From: Amoebophrya sp. A120
Taxonomy: Eukaryota; Protista; Dinoflagellata
DNA: 64,000 bases
Direction of reading: 5' to 3'
NCBI GenBank assembly: GCA_905178155.1
Contig: CAJINV010000007.1
Coordinates: forward strand, 2,895,151-2,959,150
Shown here: in pieces, positions 9,175 to 26,621 of the stretch
Position numbering within the stretch: the first letter of the stretch is position 1
Layout: the number at the start of each line of letters is the position of its first letter
Notes under the pieces: model-generated
What the model saw: the letters and a program-made list of their open reading frames with translations, nothing else
Database searches by the model: none
Told to the model about the DNA's origin: nothing
Position numbers and translations under genes: made by a program

Positions 9175-12100
9175 TTACATCACCGCACAGCTCGACTTCT
9201 TTTCGTCTACTCTCGAAACCCCCGACCGCAAACCGTCCGGGAGCAGGCCCGGTTGGGTCCAGTCGTAATCGTCGAGTGGCGATCGGTAGGAGGCGTAGGG
9301 GTTTACGTAGGTTGCAAACGGATCGGTGTATTGGTAGGTAAAGGGGTCACTATCCTTCTTCGGCGCCAGGTAGTCGCCAAAGTCATATTCGTAACGCGGG
9401 CTGTGGTGAACAAGCTTGAGATCGATGTTGCTCTGATTTTTGCGTCAACCTATCTAATGTTGATTTCATGCAAATCATATATTTTGTCAATAAGGAAAGT
9501 ATCAGCAGCATGGTGCGAAGTAGATGCATGCAGGTACAACTACTAGGTGTAGTACGCACAAACAACCACGATAAAACAATACGACGAAGCCGCCTGGCTC
9601 AGCACCTCCTCTGCCTGGTCTATCGTGGCTCCAGGGTGGCTTTTGCAGCAGCCCCGCCCCGTTTGCCCGCTGCTCGCAAGTGCAGCCTCGCGCTTATCAT
9701 TTGAAGATGATGTTCCAGGATCATCTGCAAAAAAATTCTGTCCTCCGATCATGTAGCTGGAGCTACTCGCCGGTAGAAACGGATTCTCGCTGTAGGAGTA
9801 TGGTTGATAACTGTTGTAGTCAAATCCGTACTCACCCGCTGTTGAGGACGAGGAAACTTCGAGAGGGTTACTAAACGAGTCTGAAACAGTATCAGTCCCT
9901 TATCAAAAGGAAAAGTCCCCCCTTCCCCATATCAAAACGAAATTTCTGATGCTGCATTTGAGTACACAAATCAGCTTTGTATTGCAGGAAAGAATTGCAG
10001 TCAGATCCCCAGGCTAGGTAGGGGCGCACGCGTCTAGTTGTTCAGCATGGCAAGCGGCTCCCCTTTAGGCCCAACAGCATGACAAATCGCTTCCATAATG
10101 GGGCGGAAGCTTCTGCCCTAGTCTTCTTGCAAAACAAATGTGATTTGTGACCTCAAATCAGCAACACAAATTTTCGGAAACATGCCTTTTCAGTATGGGG
10201 AGGGGGGATTTTTCCTCTCAATATCCCTCCAGGAGCAGGTCGTCCTGCCGCCGTCGTACTACTGCTGCTACTGCTACTGGAGGAGGACTTACCGTGTTCG
10301 TCTTTTTTCTCCTTTTTCACTTTCGAGCAACTACCCCCGCCCCCGCTTTCGCCCGCCGGACAGCAGACTTTGCACGGCACCGTCGCGATACAGGTGACCG
10401 GCAGGCACGCCGTCTGCACGCAGCCGTAAAACTTCCGGAGCTTCCGCTGCCGCCTGGCGCGATGGATCAGGTCGGCATGGTACTTGGTGTAGGCAACCAC
10501 TTCCCCGATAACGCAGGTCGTGTCATCCGCCTTGCCACCGTAGCCGAAGGGCGTCGGTGCCAGTCTGGTGAAGATTTGTTGTAAATTATATTAAAGCGCC
10601 GATTTTTATTCATTTCTCATGCACATAATCATGATGTACCCAAGAACTGCGGGGTCAACACTCATTGCAAATGCATATCAAGCACGACGCACAGTCTTAA
10701 GTATCTCCTATCAAATCGAAAATTGTCCTCTGCGTTCGTTCTTCTATCTGCAAAAGACTTCTTGATGCACGACTCGACAGACAAGCCACCTCTCACGAAA
10801 AAAGTCATACCCCCTTCCGTCCTCGTCGCATTTTGCCATAGCTGCAGCCACGACGGCCTCGCAGGTCTTTTTCAGCGTCTCCGACGTCTGCGGGGTATAG
10901 GCAGACGAAGAGGACTATGGACTGTGCATCTGTCTGGGTCTGAGAAATGTCATGCTAGTCTTGCATGACTCTGAACTCTGTATTGCGTGCCCTCGAAGAG
11001 GAAGAGCTCTGCTTGCCTGTCATGCAATAACGCAGTTTCTTATGCGGAGTACAAAACTCTGAGCCACGGAAACACTTGTCATGCTAGAAGCGCATGACAG
11101 TGTGCTCACCATTCCCGTCCTTGCGTCACAAGTTTCCAGACCCAGACATAGTTGCAGTTGATAAGGACGAGGGTGTGACGAAATTTTCGTTGACCGCAGA
11201 CAGGATCTCCTCGGTAAAGAGGTTGTCAAACACGCCGTCTGAAGAGGTTTAGGGATGACGATGATGATGTAGTTCTTACTATACAGTTTCGGACGCTGCT
11301 GTACACAAGCCTGAAGGTGAACAAACCTTACGAACCTTCCGAAGATTCTAGAGACAGACGATCAAAGAACGAATAAAGGTGGACAAACGGAAAGCAACAG
11401 CCACAAAATGCTATGACACGCAGCAAAGACCGCAGTATGCGTGCTTCGCGAAACAAAGCAAGCAAAAACAAAAAGAAGGTGAAACGCTGTTGCTGAAGAT
11501 AGACCACGTACCACGACGTGAACTCTTCATTATATGCCGTCACACTATGAGAGAATTTCTGTCTACTATGGGTAGAACCACTACCACGTTCAAGGTTTTT
11601 ATATCATTTTTTGTTTTTTTTGCGAGTATTTAATGCAAAACTTTTCAATCAAATCTGCACACGACTGACTCTATGGAGTTCAGTTGCGAGCAGCTTGATC
11701 TTGCTTTATTTGTAGGTTTTTGAATAGCCTTTTTGCAATAGTTAGAAGTGTCTAGTGTTAGCGCAAAATGCAGGAGAAAAAATGGCGTCTAAAATGTTGA
11801 TATGAAAATTTGCGATTTTCTGCAGCGGAGTGAAAATGATCTTTTTTCTAGCGTTATCGATATTTTCTAGGTCATTATTTTTTTTTGTGATTTTTTTCTC
11901 GACTTATAATTGCGGTTAGCGCCGTTTCGACTAACTCAATTTTGATTACATCGGTAGTTGGAGAGAAGTTTAAAAATAAGTGTATCAACATACTCTACTT
12001 GCGGGAGACCACAATTACTGCATACAAAAATATGAGTCTGCTGATCACTAAATCCAATCCGGCATTCGTGTACTGGCGGTCTCCGAAAAACTGTTTTTCC

Positions 12101-15100
12101 TAAAAGAAAATCGAGAGCACCAAGGAAAAGCGTAGACAGCGAAGCAACACCGGAATCGACTGCTGCCTGTCACTGTCTTCACTGTCTTTTTCTATATCAC
12201 AAACTGCTACTGTTAAAAATGCTTTGCGTATATTGATTTCTTCGTGGTGTAGAATGTGCGACATGCAATTCCACTTGGAACGTCTCGACCAAGGTGGCAG
12301 ATGCAGTAGCTCTAGTTCCATTCATTTTTACTTTAGTACTTGTTTCTGTTTTGAGAACTTTAGTAAAGTACGATGAAAACCGAAAGAAGCGCGCGGGGTC
12401 GTCGTCGCTTTTTTTTTATTGCGGTCTTCAAAATGCAAAGGTATCAGAGAAACGATTAGGAAGAGCCTTTACTGGCTCGCGTAGAAGTGCTGGATAAGGA
12501 TTGAGTAGTAAGGTAAAAACCGGTAGTTATCTCGTAGAACTACCGTCTGCGTTGACGGTGATATGAATCTTATCGACGCCGAGACAGTGCCTTGACATTG
12601 GACGTCTGGTTCTTTTCTAAAATAATTGCGAATGAGCATGTAAATTGCTTATGGTTTAAGTAGCTTTGCTTCCTACCTCCACCACTCGCGCGCGGGAGCA
12701 GCTCCCGGTGAGGCAACGCCAACGGAACTACCAGCGAGATTGTCAGCGCTGCCAAGTGTGTTGTTCACAGTTTCAGTCACTACAGCACAGCTTTTCTCCT
12801 CGGAAAGAGCACCCGTTCCTGCACCGAACCCCGCCTGGGTCAAAGCATCGGCCAGAATGTGCTCGAGAGGAGGCACTGTGGCATGATCTTGTTTCATCTG
12901 GGCGCTACTGATATTAGGCTGCAGGTCGCTACTCGTCTGCTGCTGCTCTTCACGCTGCTCCACGTTTTGCATCGCCACGCCTGCTCCGGTGTGGTGCTGG
13001 TAGTTGTCGACTTGTTGCCGCAGAAAGCCCAAAAGTACCTCGTCAGGCTGGTTCTCCGCAACTTGGTTGTTGTAGTGTATGCAATACAAGTTTCCCGCAC
13101 GCGCACACATACAAAATGCATGACAAATTTCGCCAAGATAGAGCAGCATGCCGCTCGTCATTCTAAACAGAAGTGAAGAAGGTAAGTTTTTCCATGCAGA
13201 AAAAGAAACCGCAAACCGCATAAGTACGTCGTCGTGTACGGTAAATTTACTGTGGATATTGTACTGAGTATGCCAGTAATTATCCACATATTCGGTTTGT
13301 TGCTTCTCTCCCGAGCCTTTCCCGCCCCAAGCGCCTCCATCGCCGGCAAATTCTGCGTCTGCCCCCGGCTGCAGCTGCCCGTGGTAATCTTCATGCCCTC
13401 CGCCCTTGAAGATATTCAATTCCCCTTTGCCGCGGTTCGCCTTTCCACCTTTGTGGCGCTGCCAGTAATAGAAGTCCTCTGGCGTTCCCCTGCGGCCGGA
13501 CTGATAGTTGTTGTAGTAGTAGCCGTCATGATTACAACTGTGGTCGTAGGTGTAATTCTTCCCACCGAAAACACGGTAATGGTCCCAGTGGTCCTTGGCA
13601 TGCGCATACGGCCCTCGTCGGGGCGTCGTGGTTGGACGATAGTTACGGTGTTGATGTTCTCCCTGTTGAGCGCTATTTTTCCCTCCGTAGCCGGACGTGT
13701 TGGTAGGCTCCTGTTCTTGGTCCGTCTTTGGGGGGCCCGAGGGGCTCTTTCTCCCATAGTGAACGTTCGGGAAGTTGGCTAGTGTGGAAAAAGACTTACC
13801 TCCTTTGTAGTTGCTGCTCGGATGATGAAAATTGTTTCCCTTGTAGCTGGAATACGGCGAGTGGCCGTAGTTGTAGCCCCGTCCTCGGGATGTTGAATCA
13901 TTTTCTTCATGTTGCTTCATTCCCTTTGTTCCTTGACCACAATGAAGATAGTCGTTGTATCCGTGTTTATTGCCGCCCTTGTGGAAGTAGTAGTTGCTCT
14001 TGCTGTTTTCAACATAAGTGGTGCCGCCGCGGTGCCAATCCTGATCTCTACCGTTGTTTCTACCTTTCATGTTGAAGTGGTCCGAATTATTATAACAGGA
14101 TTTCCAGTGGTCGTTCTTGCCCTTGTTCCAGGACGGCCGATTGTGGTTCTTACTGCTAGAATTGTCCCCTTTGTTGTTTGTCTCTGAGGAGGTCTTCGGG
14201 TGGAGCTCCGCATCTTCATCTGCAGCAGCTGCATCCCGAGTAGAAGATGCCATCGTGTCGGGCAGTCTTTCTTTTTCGCCACTGGAGGTACTATCCTTCT
14301 GTAGCGGTGAGGCAGAAGATAATTGCTGGTCCTTCTCCTCCACTGCTCCACTGGTTGTAGATCGTGAAATTGCATCTGCGTTCATCTCGATACAATTTTC
14401 TGCAACTTCTGTCGCAGGAACATCTTCGCAGCTCATGATCTTACTAATACCGGTCAACAAGCTTTCATGTTCTACTTCCTGATCCTGGCCAACACCAAAA
14501 GTGAGAGCAGCAGCCTTGTCGCTACTGTCAGCTGCTGCATCAGCTTCGGTTTTATTGTTATTCACGTTGCCCTCGTCCGCGTCCATCGCACTACCACTGG
14601 CTTCGGGTTCTTGTACTCCCACAATCGAGGACGTCGATATCAAATGCAAAAATGTCTGGGTCTGGAAGATTGCGAGATTTGTGATGCTTGTCTGGGATGA
14701 CCAAAAAGTTTGTGATGCGTGTCCAAGAAGATACCCTTTTGTCTGTCATGCAAAAACGCAGTTTGTCATGCGAAAAACGCAACACAACGAAGCGCAGATA
14801 TTTCTCATGCTCGGCTGGGCATTACAGAGCATTCACTATTCCCAACGCAGCGTCACAAGTTTCCAGACCCAGACACTTTTGCATTTGATAGTCGAAGCTG
14901 ATGAAAAATCATGGCTAGCCGTCTTTTTCAACATGAGCCGCGAAACCGGAATACCTTCTTCACTTTTTTCAACCTGTATGGATGTGTCAGGATCGAAATC
15001 GTCAAAGTTGAAATAGTTTGTCACGCATAAAATGCAACGCAGAGAGTGCCTGTCTTGCAGAGTAGGCAAGCGAGGCAGATTGTAAGCCTGTTTCGGGGTA

Positions 15101-18100
15101 GAAATAGAGCTGCTAAAGTAGCATGACAAAAGGCGTACTCCTTACCCAAACAGCATTACAGACTGGATTTCGATTCTACTGAAATTTGTCATGCGCCGCT
15201 TAGAAATTGGGCTTCCAACTGGTATCCATTTTATGCATTGCAAGTTATTTCAACTTTGTCGATTTCAACTCTGACACATCCATAACCTGTTCGGAAAAAA
15301 TACTCCCGCTCGCTGCACTGAATTCCTGGTTCATCTCGTCAAAACTTTGCTTCGCCTGTTCTTGTTTTAGTATTTCTATCGCAAGAAAAAAGTGTTTCAC
15401 TGTGAACTTGTGATGCATAGAAGGGAACGCAAATGTGTTTGTTTTGCTATACATGCAAGACATTGGATTTTTCGCCGTGTTTTCCCTTAGGAAGCACGCA
15501 TGCCAAGTTTTCTTTGTCATGTGTAGCAAACTTGTGATGCAGATCCTGCAAAATCATCACAGTGAAACAGTTTTTTCGTGGGATAATTTCCACCCCGTCA
15601 ATACTAGCAGTTGTTGCATCTCCTCCTGGAGCTGCTCCTGCTTCCTGGTTGTGAAGAACAAGAGCCACCTCATGCTCCGTGTGTTTCCTTCGTTTGCGGT
15701 TAATAAACGCACACTTCGCAAGGTGTTTGTCCTGCCCGTTCAAAACCGCCTCCCGCATCGTTGTGTAGGCATTGCCGATTCGCCGCGAAGTCTTCCCCCC
15801 GTCATCATCGTCGGGGATGATCACGCGGGTGATTGCCTGGCTCGGAGCGGATTGCGACTTACGTCTCTTCTTGTGGTGCCAACTCGATGAAACACTCGAA
15901 ACATCCGCCCGCTCAGGCGTCTCTGGTAGAATTACCCGCTCGATTTTATGAAATTCCTTGACAACCACTTCTACAGACTCTTCGTCTTTCAGCAGCTTCT
16001 CCTTGTTTTCCTTTTGCTCAGCTTTCATCACAATAGAACTACTACCAGCGCAGTCATCATCACCCGTCGAACCCGGCGTGGGTCCGTCCACCTGCTGGTC
16101 CCGGGAAGCTTCTTTTTTTACGTCCGGACTGGTAGTAGTTGTACTTGTAGCGATGATACTGGTACTACTAGTAGACACAAGGCTCCTGTCGGAATTGTTT
16201 TTTTCGGCAGAAGAGACCACTGTTGCACTGGCTACACTGGCACTGTTTGTGCTGGCAACGACGTCATACATGCTCATCTCAGCGGAGGACTTGTTTTCAG
16301 CATGATCTTCTGGAGTGTTCTTGTTCCCTAATTCGACATAGCCTTGCGCAGGACGAGTTGTCGTTGTGCGTCCTCCGGAACAAAGAGTCTCGACTTCCGA
16401 CGCTGCGTCTTCAAATTTTATCTCCTTGCTGTCATCTACAGGCTCTTCCTCTTCTGGCGAACGATCGCTGGCACCGCAACTCACAAAATCGCCACTAAGG
16501 CTGGTTTCTTTCGCCGCTGGTAGAACAACCGCGGTTGCTGGCCCAGTTTCATCAGCTGCAGGGGAAGAAGAGGTCGTGGCCACGGTAGCACCACCAGCAG
16601 CTGCAGCACGACCAATATCATCTTCGACAACAGCAGGAAGACCAGGAGCCACATTCGCAAAAGTTCTCATACTGTCGGGTGCAATAGTACTGTCCTCAAC
16701 AACAAAATTTTTTGCATCATCAGGCTGTTGTACGGCTTTTTCTGTGCTGTCCAGTTGTTCCTCCTCTGCTGCTGCTTCGGGCAGTTGTTCCTCTTTTGCA
16801 GATGAAGCTGTCGTGGCAGGAGCAAAGGGTCGCTCTGCCACCTTCCCAGCAGAAACACCCTCCATCTCAACGAGACCTTGTCGTGGTCCTGCGTCCTCGC
16901 ATGCAGCTGCAATGGTACTAGACGAGTTGTGAAGATGGTCCGGGAGGACCACGACGCTCTTCTTGCCGCAAGATGACATATTATTGGTGTTGCAGCAGCT
17001 TGCCTCAGGGCTAGTGCTGCAGGGCGAATCTTGCAGCACACTCCCTATTTCATTCGTCGAGCTGTCTTGTTTTAGCTCGTGAGGACCACCAGCAGTTCCC
17101 TCCTCGTCAGCAGCTGCAGGGTTTATTTTCATAGCTGCGTCTTCTACCTCGCAAGAAGGTGTAGCAACAGCTGCAGTTGTGTTCATCACGTCGGTAGTTT
17201 CGCTGTTCTGAAGCGGCTCCACTGGCTTGTCCTGTTTCAACTCGGTGTTGCTTGGATTAATTTTCACAACATCCTCTTCACTCTCCTGCAACATGATCTC
17301 CTTGGTACTGTGGTCCTTCTCGTCAGTTTCCGGCGGCGCAGCGTTTGATGCAGTAGTAAACGCGGACTCGGTACGAGACTTCTTCTTGTTCATTTTTCTT
17401 TTGTTTCTGCCGCTGTTGTTGCTGGGCCCCTTTTTGGCGTTTGTTCCGTTCTGCTTTCCACTCGCACTCGCGTCGGCGGCCGCAGAAGTAGATCTAGATG
17501 CACACGACGATGCCATCGGCGCAAAATTGTGTCGACTGCTCTTCCGGGTATTGTTTCCATTCTTGTTTCCGCCCTTTTGATTCCGTTTATTCCGGTCATT
17601 CTTATCATTCTCCATCTCCGCAAACCAATCACTCGGCGGCCCGAAAACTTGTCGCTGGTGCGAAAGAACGTCAGAGGGCTGGTGAGGAAAATTGCCTTTG
17701 GTGTGCCCTTTATTGAAAAACGCCCAATTATTGCTGTAGTTGTTGTGCTTGTCCTTATTTTTCCCGCCCTTCAACATCATTCCAGCAGCAGGAGCCATGT
17801 AGCTGTGATAGCTCTCACTCATTCCCTTCGCAGGACCACAGCCCCAAGAATTCTTATCTTTCCCCCACGAATCGTACTGGTGATATTTGTAGTGGTCGCC
17901 GTTGTTGTAGCTCGCGGAGACAGAAGGGGACATCATCTTGCCAACTTGAAGATCCCAATGGTGACCACCCGGACTGCCGTTCGGGTAAAAAGAACCTCCG
18001 CTGGAAGTGGTAGTAGATCCAGCGCCCAGCGGCGTCGCCGCGGTGGTGATGGGCGTTGGACCATTGGTCGTGTCTGCGAGCAGGCTTTCGAGGTCGAGGT

Positions 18101-21100
18101 TAAGGTTATTCAAAAGTTGTGAACAAGATGAAGGTGAACACGAAGTAGTAGGCCCAGAAGCTTTATAATGGTGAAGATCATTGTTTTCCTCGCCGGGCGC
18201 AGATGTTGACCCCCCGATCGCAGCCAGGATGAGCTTTTCCGCCTCAGCCATGAAGTTACTAGGTCGATCATTCGCTTGATGAGCAGGAGGTGCGGACGAT
18301 GCAGGAATCACCAGCCCCTGCTCTTCGAACGTCGGCGACGAGGTGCACATCGACAAAAGCTGGGTAATTTCCTCACTTGCCGTCATGTTCTGCAGGTTTG
18401 CATTTGTATTTGCGACTACACCCTGCGACTGCAACATTGCGGCCGGGCCGTGGGAGCCTCCCCCAGTCTGCGGTACTAGACCTAGTTCGGACAGGAGGTT
18501 AGAGGTTGTACTAGCGGCTGTAGCAGCAGATAAAGCCGCTGTTGACGCACCGTCTGGCAGGGAGGACGTTGTGGCAGAGATCGCGTGGCTCTTGTGAGAA
18601 CGCACACCGCTCTGCTGTTCATTTTCTTGCCCACAGCCGCCCGCATTGGTCAGAGCACTGGCAAAGGCCGCGTTGATGAGTTTGTCCGTTTCTGTTTCCG
18701 TAGCGTTGATCCTATCCGACGTCGAGGTGGTACTACTGCTCTGCTGGGACTTTATCTTGTCAACACCTGTGAGCAGTGGACCACCATTTTTTCCGGCGGC
18801 TCCGTCTGGTGCGCCGCTGGAACTGGTAGGCATCTCTTGCAAGAAATCTGTTCCTTTGTGTTCATCATGACTCGCCCACCCAGATTCCGGACTGCTGCTC
18901 TCCGCGCCCAGCATAAACGGCGTGCAAACTACGGACGAGCCTGGGGTCGCTGATTCTTGCAGCTGCCCCGGCGAAGATGAACCTTTGGTATTCACGGAGT
19001 TCTTCATGGTCCCCGCCGCACTTTTCGGCTCATACGACGAAGAGCCATCCCCGGAGAGGGAAGTGACGGGCATTTTCGGTGTGGCGTCCCATCCCGTGGT
19101 GACGATCTCGCAGTCTTTGAAGCGGCTAACCTCGGACGGAGCGGTGGCGGTTTCGGGGATCTGCAATTGCCCGTCGTTCATGTTGCTGTTAAACTTGTTC
19201 CCGTTGTGGTAATCCTGGTAGGCGTAATTTATCATGTACCATTCCGTGAACGAGAGGCGCGGAGGCGGACCACCGGCAGCGCTGCTGTAGTCGTCTCCCT
19301 GTGCTGCGACGACAGCACCCGGAGAAATAGCTGCCTCTGGAAGCTGATCTCCTTGTGCTGCATCACCAGCCTGTAGCTGATGTGTCGTCGTGGCCGCCCC
19401 CGTAGAAGAAGACGCCGTCGCTGTACTAGAGGAACTACCACCGTTGTTCCTTTTCAACACGGGTGACGGGACCGGTAAAACGCTGCTCTTCCTCATCGAC
19501 TTTTGTTTTTTGGAAGCAGAACCTGTCTTCTTCTGCTCCTTCTTGGAGGTGGACCACGGTGCTGCATTTTTTTTACCGCATACTTCTACTCCGGTAACGA
19601 CCCCTTCCAACCCGGCACGGTAAGAGGTATTGCCCGCGATGCTTTTGCGCTTCATAGTAGGTTGTTGCATTCGATTTTCCCTGCTGCTGGGGTCTTGCTC
19701 TACTGATTTTCCCGCGACAGGCAAGGACTGTAGTTCTCCTTGCTGTAGTAGTTCCACCTCCTCGCCCTTGCCGTTATTGTTGAGTCCCTCTCGTTCGATG
19801 ACCTGCTGCAATTTCTGGAAGAGCAGCGGCTTTTCCTCACCGGTCGTGCAGTCGTCCGGGTCGTTGTTTTTTTCTGCCTTCTCTTCCTCGAGGATCTCCC
19901 TCATCACGTCCAGTACGAGTTTACGGTCCACGTCTTCGCCTGTCCGGGACCAGATCGGCCCGTCCACCTCGATGGCCAGCAAGATCGTCCGGCTGGAGGC
20001 CTGCGGGAGCTCCCGCTGGACCACGCGGGCGGCGCGCTCGGACGCGGTTTTGCAGCTTTTGTTCGCCTGCTTCATCATCTTCGTCTGGGGTCCTCGTTGG
20101 GAACAGTATTTATTCTCGGCGTCGGTAATCACGACGAAGGGCTTGCCGTTATTGCAGAGGAGGCTCTTTGTCTTCAAACACGTTTTTAAATCGCTGAAGG
20201 CGATTTGGAAAAAGTCGTTGTCGTAGTCAAACTTGATCAGGTAATCCGTGCCCGCCAGGTCGTCATCCGGGGTGACAGGAGCGTGGTTGTTTAGGATCAT
20301 CTTCCGGGGCCTCTTGTCCACGTCTCGCTTGTTGTAGTACTTGCTAGTACTTTTATTTTTGTGCTTTTTCCCCTTACCTTTATTTGTGCAGGACTCATCT
20401 TCCGGAAGATGGCTCTGATTTGTTTTTTCGTTTTTACCTTCCTCCAGCATCCAACCGCCGACCAGCGCCTGCAAAACTTCGTCCCCTAACCATGATTTGA
20501 TGCTGGCTTTGTCCACGTACGGCTTTATCCCGTTCAGTTTCAGGGTAGGGTAATTCATCATCATCTCCACCTCCTGCGCGTCGGAGTTGTCAGCTCCGCC
20601 TCGTGATTTTTCTTCTTTCAGGTTAGCGGGCTCTTGTGGTACCTCGTCCACACAAGGAAAAGTAATAGGAGCCGGCGCAGGAGAAAGAGGTGAAGCAGGA
20701 GGTTCGACTGCAGCTGCTTCTCCTTGCTCCACGTTGTTGTTCTTGAAAGGGGTAATATTTTCATCTCCGGTGGAAAGAGGTAGAACAGATTCATCGCGAT
20801 CCTCCCGCTCTTGCTGCGTCTCAACTGCAATGATATCACTGGAAGTATTGTCAGGGACGCCGCCGTCGCTATCCATCGCTACCTTTTCGCCCGACGAGTT
20901 TGTTCGGTCCAAGTGCAATTCCATCTCTGCCACCCGTTCCCCTTGCAGCGCGTCTTGAGCACCCGGAACGACAGCTGCAACTGGAACTGCCACACTGGAG
21001 ATGATTTTGTCTCTAGAAGGATCATCTTCACTTTCCTTTTCACGACCCACGGATCCAAATATCAAACCACCATCTCGCGCCCCCTCCGCACCAACACTGC

Positions 21101-24100
21101 TGTCATCTTGTGCCCCGTCGATTTTCAAGATTTTCGTTTTCCTTGCGCGCACATTTGTAGTCGTTTCCGCATCCTCAGAGAGCGGCTGGTCGAGGTCCTC
21201 GTGGTCCTGTGAAGTGCAAGTAGACAGGGCGGTGGAGAAAAAATGTTGAAACGACTCGAGTTTATTATCGTCTTCCTTGTGCAAAAGCAAAGAAGAAGAA
21301 CTGAAGTGCTCCTGTTCGCCTGGAGCAGGTTGACAGCTCCTTTTCGGCGACGAAGGTCCTCTTCCCGGAGCATCGTGACCGTCGATAGCGGGCCGCTTAT
21401 TGCCCGTCGTCGTGGCACTTGCTGCTCCCGTCCTAGCTTGCGGGTCTGAAGAATCTAACCTGCGGTCATGCGGTTCCTGGTTGATCAGAAATGTCGACGA
21501 ACTCGAACTCGCTTCCGCAACATGAAGATCATCTACTTGTTCCGCTGCAAGATGCAAAGCGCCTTCCAGCAGCCCGCTCTTCCCCTCTCGCGCGGGCTTG
21601 GTTTCGTCACCGTTGCTGGTGGGAGTCACCATGACAAATCGCTTTGGGTGTTTGGTTTCGATAAACAAAACGGAAAAAAAATATTTACATCCGAGTCGTA
21701 GATGACCCGTTCGATAGTAATGGATTATCGATACGTTGTGTACGAAAAAAAAATGAGCAATCACGATGAAAAATTTTGGAATGACGTAGGAAATAGTTTT
21801 TTGATAATTGGAGACAATTCTCAAAGGGCGATCGATTTATCATGTAATGGTTCGATATCGCGTACCGCCTGTCACGGCAATATCATACTTGATGCGACGT
21901 CGAGTGACCAGTCACTTTAGCACGTAAAAAATTGTTGCAATGATCTCCTGCACACAGAAAGCGCACAGAAAATCATGGAAGTTGGTAATGTGAAAATTGT
22001 AAAACTAAGTAATAATCATGCAAGAAAGATAGAATAAGGTTGTCTTTGACATTCAACTTTTGAGGCCTTGCCCTTGCGCGCTGGCGGAGCGAGGCGGAGC
22101 ATAAAAAAGTAGATAATTATTCTGCGTAGAATCTGGCTGACCTTGAAAGGGGTGCTGTATAGCCTCAATTTTCAGCAGCACTGTCAACTTTCTAAACCTG
22201 TAGGAGTCGCGGTTGACAACTTCGAAAGATTGAGGTTAAAGAAAATCATTTGTCGGTCGCGAAAATATTTCGTATTTCTCGAAAAATGTAATCAGAAAGT
22301 CTGAAATCCAAAAAACCACTGAAAAACACTATGGCATAAAACTTTTGCTGTCGTCGCTATACGTGGTTTTCGCCGTGCTTTAATATCTTTCGTGCTTAGT
22401 GATATACTACTGTGCGTCTTTCTTTCCACGTCCAACCCGGATACTTTTCATTTCTGAGAAGTAACAAACAAGAAAGTTAGCAACTTCTAAACTGTAACTT
22501 CTACACTACTGAAATTCATACTACAACTTAGACGAAATTTGAAGGGGTTCTTCGCACTATCCTATTTTTCTAGGTGTAAAATGGTACAAGTCGCAAAGAC
22601 GAGCAAGCGCTGTCTTTATTCAACAAAAATCGCTGTGGGTCACATTGCAGTCCCACAATATCACTTCAACGCGACTATATTGAGAATGAGAGGCTGAAGT
22701 AGGTTGAGTCAGAGCTTGTCATGCAACAGAACACATTTCATCAGTGCCAAGCAAGAAAACAATACCACTGCCCATTATCACTACGTCGCCTTCATGCGCC
22801 GTGAAGCAATGCACTGCGGATCCCTCTTGAATGACCTTTTTTTTGGCGTGATGCACCAGTTACAACTAGATCTTCTTCTTTTTCGCTGCTACTGTCGATC
22901 GGACCTGCTGTGAGGTACCGACAAAGACAAAAATGCCAGTAAGTGTAGAAAACAGAGAAGCCTGATGCGTCCGATTATGTATGGATCTTTGTCTCAACTT
23001 CATGTTGTTCGCCTCGCTTTCAAACCAACGCTGTTGAGTAAGCTGCCCTAAAAACGCATTGCATGCGCTAGGTGAGCTGATCTAAGAGAGAAGATAGATC
23101 TGATAACGCAAGGTCCAAGGCAAGAGCCCTTGTCGAGGCAGACATCAAAAATAGCGTTACGATAAAAGGCTTCTCATACTAATGTGGCGGCTACTTTTGG
23201 TAATTCAAAAACCTCTACTTTGTGCTCCTTATCGTACCTCAAGCGCTATGTCCTCGTCGAAGTCTTCGTCTATTCGTGCATCGACGCGCGCCACCTGCAA
23301 AGGCGCTTGCTTGTGCCCACCTATCCTTTGCATATCGGTGTTGAAGACCTTTTCGTTCATTTGGTTTGCGCATCATGAAGAACAAACTCCCCCAATGAAC
23401 TTGTCCTCTCTAGCCCATTGTGCATGACAGGCAGAGTCATAAAGAAGTTCGCAATCGCAACAGTTGTACAGAAGATACCCGCTCGAGTGGTGCGTTGACA
23501 GCACTCCTGCGCAGCAACAGCATGCCACAGTCTCCTATCGACAACACCGCGATCATGGGGTGGGTCTTGCCGTGCACCTTCGTCATGTTGTCCAGTGCGC
23601 ACAGCATTATCGTTGTCGAGCCCAAGGCGGAAGTTGATTCGTACGCGTCGGTGAGGAGGGAAACGGGGCCCTTGTATCTGGTACAACAGTGTCAACATCT
23701 TGATCAACTACATGCCGTCGCACTTCTATTTTTGCTTGTTGTAGGTCGGTACTAACTTCTAGGATCGCTCGCATGCTGCACACCTGCTTCACAAACTGTG
23801 CTAAAGCAAGAGGCGACCAGCAAGTTGTAAACGCATTCGCAAAATAAGCTCGTCCTGTAGGAACCAACATGACTCCGATCTGCTATAAATACATTTCCTT
23901 CGGTTTGCTGTGCAAACTTTTCTCCTCGGGCATGAGCTGCTGGTAGGCCAGCTCTTCGCAGGCCCGGCACAGGGCGTCCGGAAGGTCCATGGGGTTGTAG
24001 CCGTATTCTTCCAACTGACTCACTCCGTCCATAACTCCGGTCAGCATGGGCGTGGTGATGACCGCATCCGCGAACGTGGCCTTCATTGCCACCTTCTGCG

Positions 24101-25068
24101 GGTTATGGAAGTGTCAGAATCGAAATTGACAAAATCGAAAAACTTGTGATGCATAAAATCGATATCAGTTGGAGCCTCAGTTTCCAAGAGGCGCATGACA
24201 TGCTGTTTGGGCACCCAAAGCCAGTCTGTCATGCTGTTTGGGCAAAGAAGACTGCTCCTGTCATGCTACTTTGGCGGCGCATTGTATACCCCGAAACAGG
24301 CTTGCAATCGGTTTTATTTGCCTGCTCCCCAATGGATGCAGGCCTTCAGTGCCCTACATTTTATCATGCGTCACAATTTTTTCGATTTTGTCGATTTCGA
24401 TCCTGACACATCCATACGGGTGGATGTCCCCGTAGGACTCGGACTGGAAGCAAAGCGCCACATCCTTATCAAATGCCAAAATGTCTGGGTCTGGAAGATT
24501 TCTAGATTTTTCAGGCATATTTTCCATGACCCATGATGTCGGTGATGCATGCCGTAGCATCACAGATTTTTAGAGCGCTTTGTGATACCTCTACCGCATG
24601 AGAAACGCCATCTCCGCGTAAGTAGCACAAACTGGAGTCCTCTTGCTGGTCATGCAATACAAATTTTTTCAGAATCCAGAGACAGCATCACAAGTTTAGA
24701 AGGTTCCTTCCAGACCCAAACACATTTGCATTTGATAATCCTTCTTCCGTTGCCACGTCGCTTCCACGGTTTCCCGTTCGTCCTTTTTGAACTCGGCGAG
24801 ATTGTTATCCAAGAAAGAAACTGTGTAAGTGTAACTTTGTGTTGCAGACGTTGCAATACAGTTACACTTGTCATGCTGGATGTGCATCAGAGGCTATTTT
24901 CATACGTGTTTTCGCGTACTAGCTACGCATAACAGGTTTTCTCTGTTATGCAGAGCAAATCTGTAATGCTGTTCCTGCAAAAAAGTTACACTTACACACT
25001 TTTTTCCTTGGATAATTGTGGCGCTGCTGCTGCGTGCCGACAAGAAACGTCGACGCGCGCTGGAGCAT
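9175..25068 (-). CDS. PTC7-like PP2C (PPM) protein phosphatase; ~12 exons, including an 11.5-kb intron
   Basis: The spliced protein has the PTC7 motifs in order: IHPQK..FADA, GVMDGV, AYESTSALGSTT, SIGDCG, APLQV, EGDVVIMGS|DGVFDNL, TPFGYGGKADDTTCV. ATG at 25068; last exon and stop (9207 or 9175) uncertain. Confidence 0.85.
9901..10223. mobile_element. Introner family D (323 nt), opposite orientation to the 4412 copy
   Basis: TATC..GAAAAGTCCCCCCTTCCCCATA / TATGGGGAGGGGGGATTTTTC..ATA; TSD TCCCT; frame restored (PGGTDTV). Confidence 0.9.
10916..11163. mobile_element. Introner family C (248 nt)
   Basis: TGTCTGGGTCTG / CAGACCCAGACA TIR core; TSD AGGAC; frame restored (TPSSSSSAY). Confidence 0.88.
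12673..21632 (-). CDS. Very large (~2,700 aa) low-complexity protein with a possible degenerate RRM-like segment and N/G/K/Y-rich regions; nested in the PTC7 intron
   Basis: ORFs 15447..21824 and 12673..14649 join via exons 15285-15371 and 14891-14971 once three introners are removed (DGVEI|LKQEQ...SEQV|EKSEE...SAST|SSIVG). It may continue past a GT at ~12675. Confidence 0.8.
13078..13258. mobile_element. Old, in-frame, stop-free introner hidden inside the ORF
   Basis: TATGCAATACAAGTTTCCCGCACGCG vs reverse complement of the right end TATCCACAGTAAATTTACCGTACACG; contains GCATGACA; 181+5=186 nt, so the ORF reads through an out-of-character hydrophobic peptide. Confidence 0.6.
14638..14890. mobile_element. 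Introner family C (253 nt)
   Basis: Near-perfect 30-bp TIR TATCAAATGCAAAAATGTCTGGGTCTGGAA; TSD GTCGA. Confidence 0.93.
14977..15284. mobile_element. Introner family B (308 nt) whose TSD creates canonical GT-AG sites
   Basis: TIR TATGGATGTGTCAG; TSD ACCTG (CAGGT on the coding strand). Confidence 0.93.
15377..15585. mobile_element. Introner family E (209 nt)
   Basis: TATC.CA.GAAAAAA.TGTTTCACTGTGA inverted at both ends; TSD ATTTC. Confidence 0.9.
24104..24416. mobile_element. Introner family B (313 nt), reversed relative to the other three B copies
   Basis: TIR TATGGA.GTGTCAG; TSD CGGGT; removal gives DIHPQKVA. Confidence 0.93.
24467..24737. mobile_element. Introner family C (271 nt)
   Basis: TATCAAATGC..TGTCTGGGTCTGGAAG TIR; TSD ATCCT; removal gives RKKDVAL. 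Confidence 0.92.
24806..25014. mobile_element. Introner family E (209 nt)
   Basis: TATCCAAG..AAA.TGTGTAAGTGTAACTTT TIR; TSD ATTGT; removal gives QRHNLAEF. Confidence 0.92.
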
Positions 25069-26621
25069 CTTGATTGATTTCTGCCTCAGGGCCTGGTGAT
25101 TGACAACGATAGGGTTGTACTAGTGTCGGGTTTAATCAATCTTGTTCGTAATATTTATCGCGTGTTGCCGGTTTTCGAGTACGGATACCTACTTAATACT
25201 TCCTCCGGTCGTGCACGCAAATTGCGCCGGCGGGGTGATGCTACTTATTTACGAAAGACGGTGAATGTCAGTGAAGTCAGGACCCGAGCAAAGATAGAAG
25301 GTTCAGGTTCAGGTTTGGAAGTTGTACTCGATCTATACGTAGCAACGAATTTTGCAAGTCCAAATAGAACAAAGTAGTAATCATGATATATGCATACGAC
25401 AACAATCTATGTCAATTCCGTTTCCATTACAGACGCCAGCACAGGTTGAATTTTACCACCGACCGACCAGAAAAACCGACGTGTGATATGCACACACTGC
25501 AGAGAGGACATCGACGCGCACACAGAGACACTTTGACTTTCGCATGATACGGCGCATACCACATATATCCGAAGCATTTCCACCACAGACGTAATTCACG
25601 GGTCTTCACAATACCAGGCGCCACTTCAACGTGGAATCTCACGTAACGCGTGCTGACTGAAAGAAACAAAAACGAATACTAGTTCCCGAGGTGAACAATC
25701 AAGAAGTACTTTGCAAAGCATAGCAGGTTCAAGTTTTGGCCGCGGTCGCCGATGCCAAAGCGGAATATAATTTCCTCACTTTTTTTTCTTATCTTCATTG
25801 CGTCGCGAAAAAGCGGAAAGTCGCCAAATAAAAGGTCGCGTATTTTGTCGTCTAATGCTGCTGGGTCTTCTTCCCAATGGTCGCTGAAAGATGACAGGGT
25901 GTTGTGGGCAGCAGGAGGAAGGTTTGATTTTCTTGGTAGCCAAAAAGGGTATACAGTTCGGAAAACAGAATACTAGAAATATTAAGTCAGAACGAACTTT
26001 AGATGTGGAATTTTTAGTAGAGCGTCGACGTCATTGTCCTAAAAGCAGAACTTTTAGGGAGTAGAAGTTTTGAATGACTAAAAAAGGTCACGACGAAAAA
26101 TGTTGTCGGGTGGCCTCAAATAGTTTCAATCCTACTACTCCAGAGCAAGGTACTACCGTCACAACTTGGTGGTTATTGTCCCGGTTTCTGAAGCAACTGT
26201 GAGAGGTCAGAAAAAAATGCGATACTCTTTTTGCAACTTCCTAAAAGACGGAGAAGAAAATGCAATTCGATGGGAAATTGCATCATCTGCACAAACAGAA
26301 ACGGAAACTTCTGTGCTTAGCTTTTCGCTTTTATTGCATAAGTGACAATGGAAAATTCGCTTCCTTCAAGTCCAAAGACTCAAAGCATCATAAAAGAAGC
26401 TCAACTTGATCTGCTCAAGGGGGCCCTATATTCTTTTTGCACTTTTCATTCGTTGTTTAGGTTAGTTTGACGTGCGAGAAAGGATTAACATCATTTCTTG
26501 TCGCCATAAAATTCAACATCGAAAACAGCTGCACACATGATCAACGTGGAAGGATGGTTATGCTCATGAGCATGACAAGAGTCAGATGCTATAAAAATCT
26601 TCAGTATCGGTGTTCATTTCT

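Follow-up and report, generated by a model that had tools for sequence, protein, structure and literature searches.

In Amoebophrya sp. A120 an 11.5-kb intron of a phosphatase gene contains a complete second gene on the same strand, and this layout is real. The host is a PTC7-like PP2C gene of 12 exons on the minus strand (25068-9178 of the window, i.e. of the whole 64-kb stretch of DNA that was analysed) and the codon for its Asp250 is split by the 11,527-nt intron 7 (22765-11239). Quite probably there is one functional PTC7-like PP2C gene here, with intron 7 an ordinary GT-AG spliceosomal intron that carries an independently expressed orphan gene. As an arrangement it is an ordinary case of gene nesting within a long intron. 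A preliminary description of this DNA had proposed a whole same-strand gene of ~2,700 amino acids inside an 11.5-kb intron cutting a catalytic Asp codon, and that proposal is borne out by mapping and by colinear homology (Table 1). Novelty is limited in that both gene models are already present in the public NCBI annotation.

Table 1. Features of the host and nested genes, with coordinates in the 64-kb window
Feature	Coordinates	Strand	Basis
Host PP2C exons 1-7, N-terminal half, aa 1-249 of P0191	25068..22767	-	P0191 exact mapping, homologue tblastn
Exon blocks 1-7 (full codons)	25068-25015, 24800-24738, 24461-24417, 24098-23895, 23676-23476, 23345-23235, 22832-22767	-	
Host intron 7, 11,527 nt, GT...AG, phase 1 in Asp250 codon	22765..11239	-	Sequence ends, single-copy flanks
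AT-rich spacer, host donor to inner-gene start codon, GC 0.39	22765..21633	-	
Nested orphan gene, 5 exons, ~2,662 aa	21632..12673	-	ORF, P0221 mapping, X1 contigs
AT-rich spacer, inner-gene stop codon to host acceptor, GC 0.40	12672..11239	-	
Host PP2C exons 8-12, C-terminal half, aa 250-600	11238..9175	-	P0191 mapping, homologues, A25 orthologue
Exon blocks 8-12	11238-11165, 10911-10810, 10563-10225, 9896-9582, 9399-9178	-	

The splice junction and intron 7

Exact mapping of the public host model P0191 places the borders of exons 7 and 8 at 22766 and 11238. Exon 7 ends ...GTG ATA ATG GGC AGT G/GTATTG at 22766 (the slash marks the border) and exon 8 starts ...CTCTTCAG/AC GGC GTG TTT GAC AAC at 11238; the Asp250 codon begins at 22766, and G plus AC restores GAC (Asp), a phase-1 match that confirms what had been said earlier of the phases at this junction. 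The intron runs G/GTATTGTTTT ... CCTCTTCAG/AC, with the canonical ends G/GTATTG...TTCAG/AC, and its donor, GTATTGTTTT, recurs unchanged in host intron 11; introns 4, 5 and 9 likewise have donors of the GTAT type. The match of GT, AG and phase at the break is far more than chance would give, because a random gene break would lack an exact GT/AG and the correct phase.

The length of intron 7 is due to the complete gene that sits in it. The remaining ten host introns measure 130-402 nt and the four introns of the inner gene 186-313 nt, so that the other introns of the locus are indeed as short as had been supposed, and introns in the A120 genome are normally <1 kb. Introner features, namely TIR and TSD, are present in host introns 1, 2, 3, 8 and 10, but a check of terminal repeats and end sequences found neither in intron 7, both flanks of which are single copy in the genome. 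An introner origin of intron 7 was rejected on the grounds of its canonical ends, the lack of terminal repeats and its single-copy flanks. No RNA genes were found within the intron.

The host phosphatase

In tblastn searches the full-length homologues P0010, P0014, P0005 and P0001 match residues up to ...GS at 22835-22767 and continue with DGVFDNLF from 11242 onward. All four run colinearly over the break, in agreement with the earlier observation that no motif is duplicated or missing, and colinearity with zero residues lost or duplicated holds there for homologues from dinoflagellates as it does for the orthologue in Amoebophrya A25. A second copy of either half was not found within the 64-kb window by tblastn, and elsewhere in the 115-Mb genome PP2C-like sequence is limited to a compact paralogue on C11 and one weak match on C1. 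For the case in which each half joins a different paralogous partner, which had been considered at the outset, the genome offers no alternative partner for either half.

When 22 members of the family were combined into a profile, it matched PDB 6ae9 ("Probable protein phosphatase 2C 1") with an E of 3e-15 (profile 81-342, chain residues 33-257 of 260), and did so as a single stretch that passes through the junction. In this the A120 protein resembles PTC7/PPTC7-type PP2C (PPM) enzymes, but it differs from them in belonging to a divergent dinoflagellate/syndinean subfamily that lies below the Pfam cut-offs and in having a long, poorly conserved C-terminal tail with a CaaX-like box, the protein ending in CAVM followed by the stop codon. 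The Pfam gathering score was missed both by P0191 (13.8 bits on SpoIIE, cut-off 25) and by P0193 (14.2 bits on PP2C, cut-off 20.3), and single host exons had no Pfam matches. Neither the Pfam search of single exons nor a genome-wide search with PF07228 gave a signal strong enough to identify the family, which was settled by the homologues and the profile. The conserved motifs of the family are GVxDGVSQ, GSTT, GSDGVFDN and GGKxDD. In alignment A3, D78, D250, D321 and D322 of P0191 show little or no variation, and from knowledge of the family we take them to be the metal-binding aspartates of DG motif 2, DG motif 8 and the DD/DN motif 11. The metal-binding set is complete in neither host half alone.

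Identity to A25 in the catalytic core is 73% for the N-terminal half and 61% for the C-terminal half, against an average of 48-51% for A120/A25 orthologues (PMC7789003), and the exons are intact throughout (five of five in the C-terminal half, 12 of 12 in the whole gene). A core identity above the orthologue average, combined with intact C-terminal exons, argues that purifying selection acts on both halves, although a very recent disruption would likewise leave both intact.

The nested gene

The inner ORF comprises five exons (21632-15585, 15370-15284, 14970-14890, 14631-13258 and 13071-12676) and a TAG stop at 12675-12673, and, with the ATG at 21632 as start codon, the protein would be 2,662 aa long. 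Together with P0221 it lies at 21632-12676, wholly within one host intron and with zero exons in common with the host. Three of its four introns bear terminal inverted repeats and are introners, and the preliminary description was therefore right to see a gene running from 21632 to ~12673 with introners of its own. It was right, too, about AT-rich flanks, the GC content being 0.51-0.53 in the ORF against 0.39 and 0.40 in the intronic sequence on its two sides.

The inner protein is rich in Ser, Ala, Glu, Gly and Thr and is mostly disordered. It contains no Pfam family, and no homologue was found outside A120 in a search that was saturated by low-complexity words. Comparison with the atlas turned up nothing beyond weak RRM-like leads, with a score of 0.84 that is below the level that counts, and an AlphaFold single-sequence model (pLDDT 36.6) was uninformative. 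The gene is single copy in the genome, as judged from its flanks and one possibly folded inner segment. When it was searched for a transposase, RT or integrase domain, for TIR/TSD, for multiple copies and for a DinoSL relic, none of these was found. Transposon cargo was rejected in view of the single-copy flanks and inner segment and the lack of TIR/TSD and of a transposase domain, and a retroposed cDNA was rejected in view of the missing DinoSL relic and the presence of introns.

Public annotation and read evidence

The public NCBI model CAD7955917.1 (= P0191) reads ...VIMGSDGVFDNLF... over the host junction. CAD7955919.1, also a public NCBI model, is the nested gene and is annotated as 5'-truncated; the public model P0221 begins with the Met at 17393 and comprises no more than the C-terminal 1,249 aa of the inner protein, and the public inner-gene model thus appears to be ~1,400 N-terminal residues short. 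The gene identifiers were absent from the supplementary expression tables of the published papers searched. The public annotation of A120 is transcriptome-guided, and P0191 has non-GT-AG introner borders on both sides of intron 7, so that transcript alignments are the sole possible source of those borders. The annotation pipeline also supplied the model builder with Genewise protein alignments that use canonical sites, and the 22766/11238 junction in the public model may have such an alignment, and not a transcript, as its source. Intron validation in the genome paper was limited to 10 kb (PMC7789003); an 11.5-kb intron therefore cannot have been confirmed there, and it is a limit of the resource that A120 introns >10 kb escaped this validation.

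No reads or contigs spanning 22766/11238 were obtained: the RNA runs X9-X11 had not a single read in this region, and X1 lacked unique coverage of host exons. A scan of metagenome contigs did not find the exon-7 pattern. The contigs of X1, which are presumed to be RNA, cover 20995-21375 and 21442-21680 of the inner gene, with no spacer beyond 21680 and no host exons, and the contig end at 21680 carries no spliced-leader overhang. X1 holds about half of the words of 15450-25100, whereas X5 and X6, presumed to be DNA, hold 0.93 of them. If X1 is RNA as presumed, its pattern fits an independently expressed inner gene. Because the mature junction was not seen in reads, we infer rather than observe the cis-splicing over 11.5 kb, which is likely.

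Alternative explanations

The same read evidence bears on the suggestion that the phosphatase gene is recently broken, i.e. that orphan-bearing DNA landed in a short intron, that splicing over 11.5 kb fails and leaves the halves unjoined, and that the public model bridges them by protein homology only. Junction reads were not obtained, X1 has the inner gene without host exons, Genewise protein alignments with canonical sites did enter the model builder and local introns are normally <1 kb, all of which would be in keeping with a break. We nevertheless regard it as unlikely: the 12 exons are all intact and both halves lie well above the genome-wide orthologue identity, the splice sites of intron 7 are of the normal local type and no TSD, TIR, other copy or DinoSL relic is present that would mark an insertion. 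The inner gene, moreover, carries four introns that it has gained and is therefore not brand new at the locus.

Split genes are joined by trans-splicing in the case of Giardia Hsp90 and dynein, where the intron halves are brought together by pairing. The A120 locus is similar in that a conserved protein has its two halves encoded at a distance from each other and the break is bordered by splice-site-like sequence, but here the halves are on the same strand, in the correct order, 11.5 kb apart and without intron-half complementarity, so that cis-splicing is sufficient. It is quite unlikely that the halves come from separate precursors and are joined in trans, or that DinoSL addition and polyadenylation cut the inner mRNA out of a long precursor whose host exons are still joined. 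DinoSL trans-splicing affects at least 37.8% of A120 transcripts, the genes lie in long co-oriented blocks within which expression profiles differ from gene to gene, and X1 has the inner gene without the spacer; these points would suit such a scheme. However, the two ends of the intron (22765-21700 and 12675-11239) share no inverted repeat of ≥18 nt through which they could pair, the X1 contig ending at 21680 shows no spliced-leader overhang and cis-splicing accounts for everything with fewer assumptions. A relic search found no DinoSL relic, and the trans-joining and spliced-leader options raised in the preliminary description thus gained no positive support. That the phosphatase mRNA arises other than by simple cis-splicing, be it by joining of the halves in trans or by excision of the inner mRNA through DinoSL and polyadenylation with ligation of the host exons, is considered very unlikely; if true, same-strand nested genes in Amoebophrya would show a spliced-leader-specific way to resolve overlapping transcription units.

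An assembly error, with an 11.5-kb block misplaced into a short phosphatase intron, is highly improbable, as both breakpoints would need to fall in one short intron, the borders are free of repeats on which an assembler could go astray and each flank is unique, 0.93 of the words of 15450-25100 are found in X5 and X6 (presumed DNA) and the assembly was built with Nanopore long reads (PMC7789003).

Expression and comparison with other nested genes

For one functional gene with an ordinary intron 7 the following sequence of events may be envisaged. RNA polymerase II would transcribe the host from ~25.1 kb via the inner gene to ~9.1 kb, the spliceosome would join 22766 to 11238 in cis, restoring the catalytic Asp codon, and the inner gene would leave with the lariat. 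The inner mRNA might start at a 5' end of its own near 21680 or be processed from a fraction of the read-through RNA, so that any one precursor molecule could give one product or the other. Both the cis-splicing across 11.5 kb and the manner in which the two genes share transcription are what we infer.

Nested intronic protein-coding genes are well known in eukaryotes (Kumar 2009, Eukaryot Cell, as cited in PMC12584245). The A120 locus conforms in that one host intron encloses an entire gene, exons and introns included, and in that the host exons on either side would make up one protein; it departs from the typical case in its setting, a compact syndinean genome with introns normally <1 kb and near-total co-orientation, and in that the host junction is predicted by a gene model. 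In a related lineage, the dinoflagellate Amphidinium carterae, genes likewise lie within host introns: nested genes are common there, amounting to 25% of genes, and long introns are the rule in a 1.25-Gb genome (PMC12584245, 2025), whereas an intron of 11.5 kb is an outlier in the 115-Mb genome of A120. The nested genes of A. carterae are on average expressed above their hosts (PMC12584245), which matches the contigs of X1, presumed to be RNA, in which the inner gene but not the host is seen. The A120 genome paper makes no mention of nesting, with 0 occurrences of 'nested' (PMC7789003). [quoted passage not shown]

What the locus provides is a clean same-strand nested gene in an organism that has spliced-leader trans-splicing and in which nearly all genes are co-oriented, and it could serve for asking how the splicing of a host intron competes with the formation of the 5' and 3' ends of the gene within it.

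The host phosphatase gene and its interrupted codon

The preliminary description proposed that one PP2C gene is split by an 11.5-kb intron within an Asp codon, with matching phase and nothing doubled or missing, and the sequence of the window, positions 2895151-2959150 of contig C7, agrees on each point. On the minus strand exon 7 ends GTG ATA ATG GGC AGT G, followed by GTATTGTTTTC, at 22766 and exon 8 begins, after CCTAAACCTCTTCAG, with AC GGC GTG TTT GAC AAC at 11238; the intron has GT-AG ends and the G of exon 7 and the AC of exon 8 re-form GAC (Asp). A phmmer search with a single-exon query gathered 72 relatives, and four full-length ones were colinear with the window by tblastn (24104-22767, then 11242-11141, then 10572-10420), with no residue lost or duplicated across the break and no second copy of either half within the window. 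Nor does either half have another paralogous partner, as the only other loci in the 115.5-Mb assembly (401 contigs) that resemble the host protein are a weak match on contig C1 and a compact paralogue on contig C11 with both halves inside 2.7 kb. The split arrangement at 22766/11238 is far beyond chance. In the C11 paralogue (G000:C11:3358815-3361551) the GSDG region is unbroken and forms part of a 561-aa open frame.

Pfam found no family in single host exons, and the full proteins fell under its cut-offs (SpoIIE 13.8 bits, PP2C 14.2 bits). A profile of 22 family members, however, matched the solved PP2C structure 6ae9 (E 3e-15) in a single stretch, profile positions 81-342, that passes through the exon 7/8 junction, and several relatives carry the JGI name "protein phosphatase PTC7". 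Three motifs, GVMDGVSQ, GSDGVFDN and GGKADD, carry Asp residues that are invariant or nearly so in the family alignment. We take these Asp residues to be metal ligands of PPM enzymes, and since these putative ligands are distributed across both halves neither half should be able to function alone. The catalytic core is 73% (140/193) identical to that of the strain A25 orthologue in the N-terminal half and 61% (57/94) in the C-terminal half, compared with a mean of 48 - 51% for A120/A25 orthologues (PMC7789003). Such identity, together with five open exons out of five and a retained CaaX-like C-terminal box (CAVM in A120, CSIM in A25), argues that the C-terminal half is kept under selection as part of one protein with the N-terminal half. 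The box lies at 9178-9189 (minus) and the dinoflagellate family consensus likewise ends CxIx; a CaaX-like terminus in both strains and the consensus suggests that the phosphatase may be prenylated and membrane-anchored.

Public annotation and intron classes

A profile made of one homologue and the host exons as separate, unjoined rows retrieved the A120 protein CAD7955917.1 (GSA120T00007975001; 600 aa; "unnamed protein product [Amoebophrya sp. A120]") and its A25 orthologue. The former reads EGDVVIMGSDGVFDNLFTEEIL across the exon 7/8 junction and maps onto the window with 100% identity as 12 exons between 25068 and 9178. A host model spanning the junction and a model of the inner gene, each an exact match to the window, are thus both already in the public annotation. 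Apart from intron 7 the host introns measure 130-402 nt. Introns 1, 2, 3, 8 and 10 are introners, each with inverted repeats at its termini, a target duplication and borders other than GT-AG, whereas 4, 5, 6, 9 and 11 are canonical GT-AG introns, with a GTAT donor in 4, 5, 9 and 11 and GTAC in 6; intron 7 is also canonical and its donor, GTATTGTTTT, is that of intron 11. Introners of the same three families occur in both host and inner gene: the first introns of the two genes resemble each other, inner intron 2 corresponds to host intron 3, and inner intron 3 has counterparts in host introns 2 and 8 (79% over 72 nt).

Coordinates of host intron 7 and of the introners compared; every introner shown has terminal inverted repeats and a target duplication, and none has GT-AG borders
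Feature	Position	Strand	Remark
Host intron 7	22765-11239	minus	11,527 nt; from mapping of CAD7955917.1
Host introner	25014-24801	minus
Host introner	24737-24462	minus
Host introner	24416-24099	minus
Host introner	11164-10912	minus
Inner-gene introner	15584-15371	minus
Inner-gene introner	15283-14971	minus
Inner-gene introner	14889-14632	minus

The A120 annotation drew on BLAT-aligned assembled transcripts and Genewise-refined protein alignments (PMC7789003). Non-canonical borders on either side of intron 7 are derivable from transcripts only, so both halves must be transcribed and spliced, but the intron 7 edge itself could derive from either source. A recently broken gene, its halves bridged in the annotation by homology only, is nevertheless unlikely, given that both halves are intact and conserved and the splice sites normal. 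RNA-seq validation of introns had a maximum length of 10 kb, with analysis limited to 40-1000 bp (PMC7789003, Methods); intron 7 was therefore never covered by it, and for neither A120 nor A25 did it survey long introns or nested genes.

The inner gene and its expression

The inner gene had been placed from 21632 to about 12673, with its own introners and AT-rich flanks, and this holds: an ATG at 21632 opens a frame that runs to 15585 and then via four introns (three introners and one other short intron) to 12676, followed by a TAG stop and giving 2,662 aa from that ATG, between spacers of GC 0.39 and 0.40, each unique in the genome. Ser, Ala, Glu, Gly and Thr are abundant in its product, which contains no Pfam family; no homologue was found outside A120 in a search saturated by low-complexity words, an atlas search gave weak RRM-like leads only, a single-sequence fold gave no usable structure, and the single possibly folded segment has one copy in the genome. 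The public model, CAD7955919.1 (GSA120T00007976001), comprises the final 1,249 aa only, from an internal Met at 17393 (minus).

The data under the same species label comprised three raw RNA runs, four contig sets presumed to be RNA, and four probable DNA sets. RNA runs among these were compared with 20800-25200, the donor side, because spliced-leader addition cannot account for a used donor. One of the presumed RNA contig sets covers 20995-21375 and 21442-21680, the 5' part of the inner gene plus 48 nt of leader, and on this basis the gene seems to be expressed, with its 5' end well upstream of the public start. As the frame is also open through 17394-21632 (minus), the real product probably extends some 1,400 aa beyond the N-terminus of the public model. 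This set had no contig on the spacer 21682-22765, no unique match on host exons, and otherwise only short introner-repeat pieces. The 2026 raw runs gave zero reads on 20800-25200, even over the contig-covered inner gene, and may come from another strain or be poor in parasite RNA. The exact exon 7 pattern matched no metagenome contig, and the gene identifiers matched nothing in the supplementary tables of published papers searched.

Origin and processing of the nested arrangement

No sign was found that the intron 7 block is a transposon, introner or retrocopy: its spacers are unique, its ends lack terminal inverted repeats, target duplication and long complementarity, and it contains no DinoSL relic, Rfam family or tRNA. 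Joining of the halves in trans, or processing of the inner mRNA out of the intron, is a little less likely even than a broken gene, although DinoSL trans-splicing affects at least 37.8% of A120 transcripts (PMC7789003); against both stand intron ends without complementarity and the absence of an insertion signature. An assembly error, with borders unique in the genome, is very improbable.

Genes nested in introns have long been known. In Amphidinium carterae 25% of genes lie in host introns, with a mean expression about twice that of their hosts (PMC12584245, 2025), and the A120 inner gene likewise sits in the intron of a host gene. Nesting is not mentioned in the genome paper of Amoebophrya, a syndinean parasite of dinoflagellates whose introns are short, many of them non-canonical introners (PMC7789003). 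The A120 pair is a further example of a known arrangement, but its 11.5-kb intron is unusual for this genome. Co-oriented blocks hold 98.5% of A120 genes (PMC7789003), so the same strand is expected for any nested gene. On the simplest account transcription of the host pre-mRNA would continue across the inner gene and cis-splicing would join 22766 to 11238, while the inner gene would produce its own mRNA. A precursor cleaved and polyadenylated at the inner 3' end would be lost to the host, and the two products would therefore compete for it.
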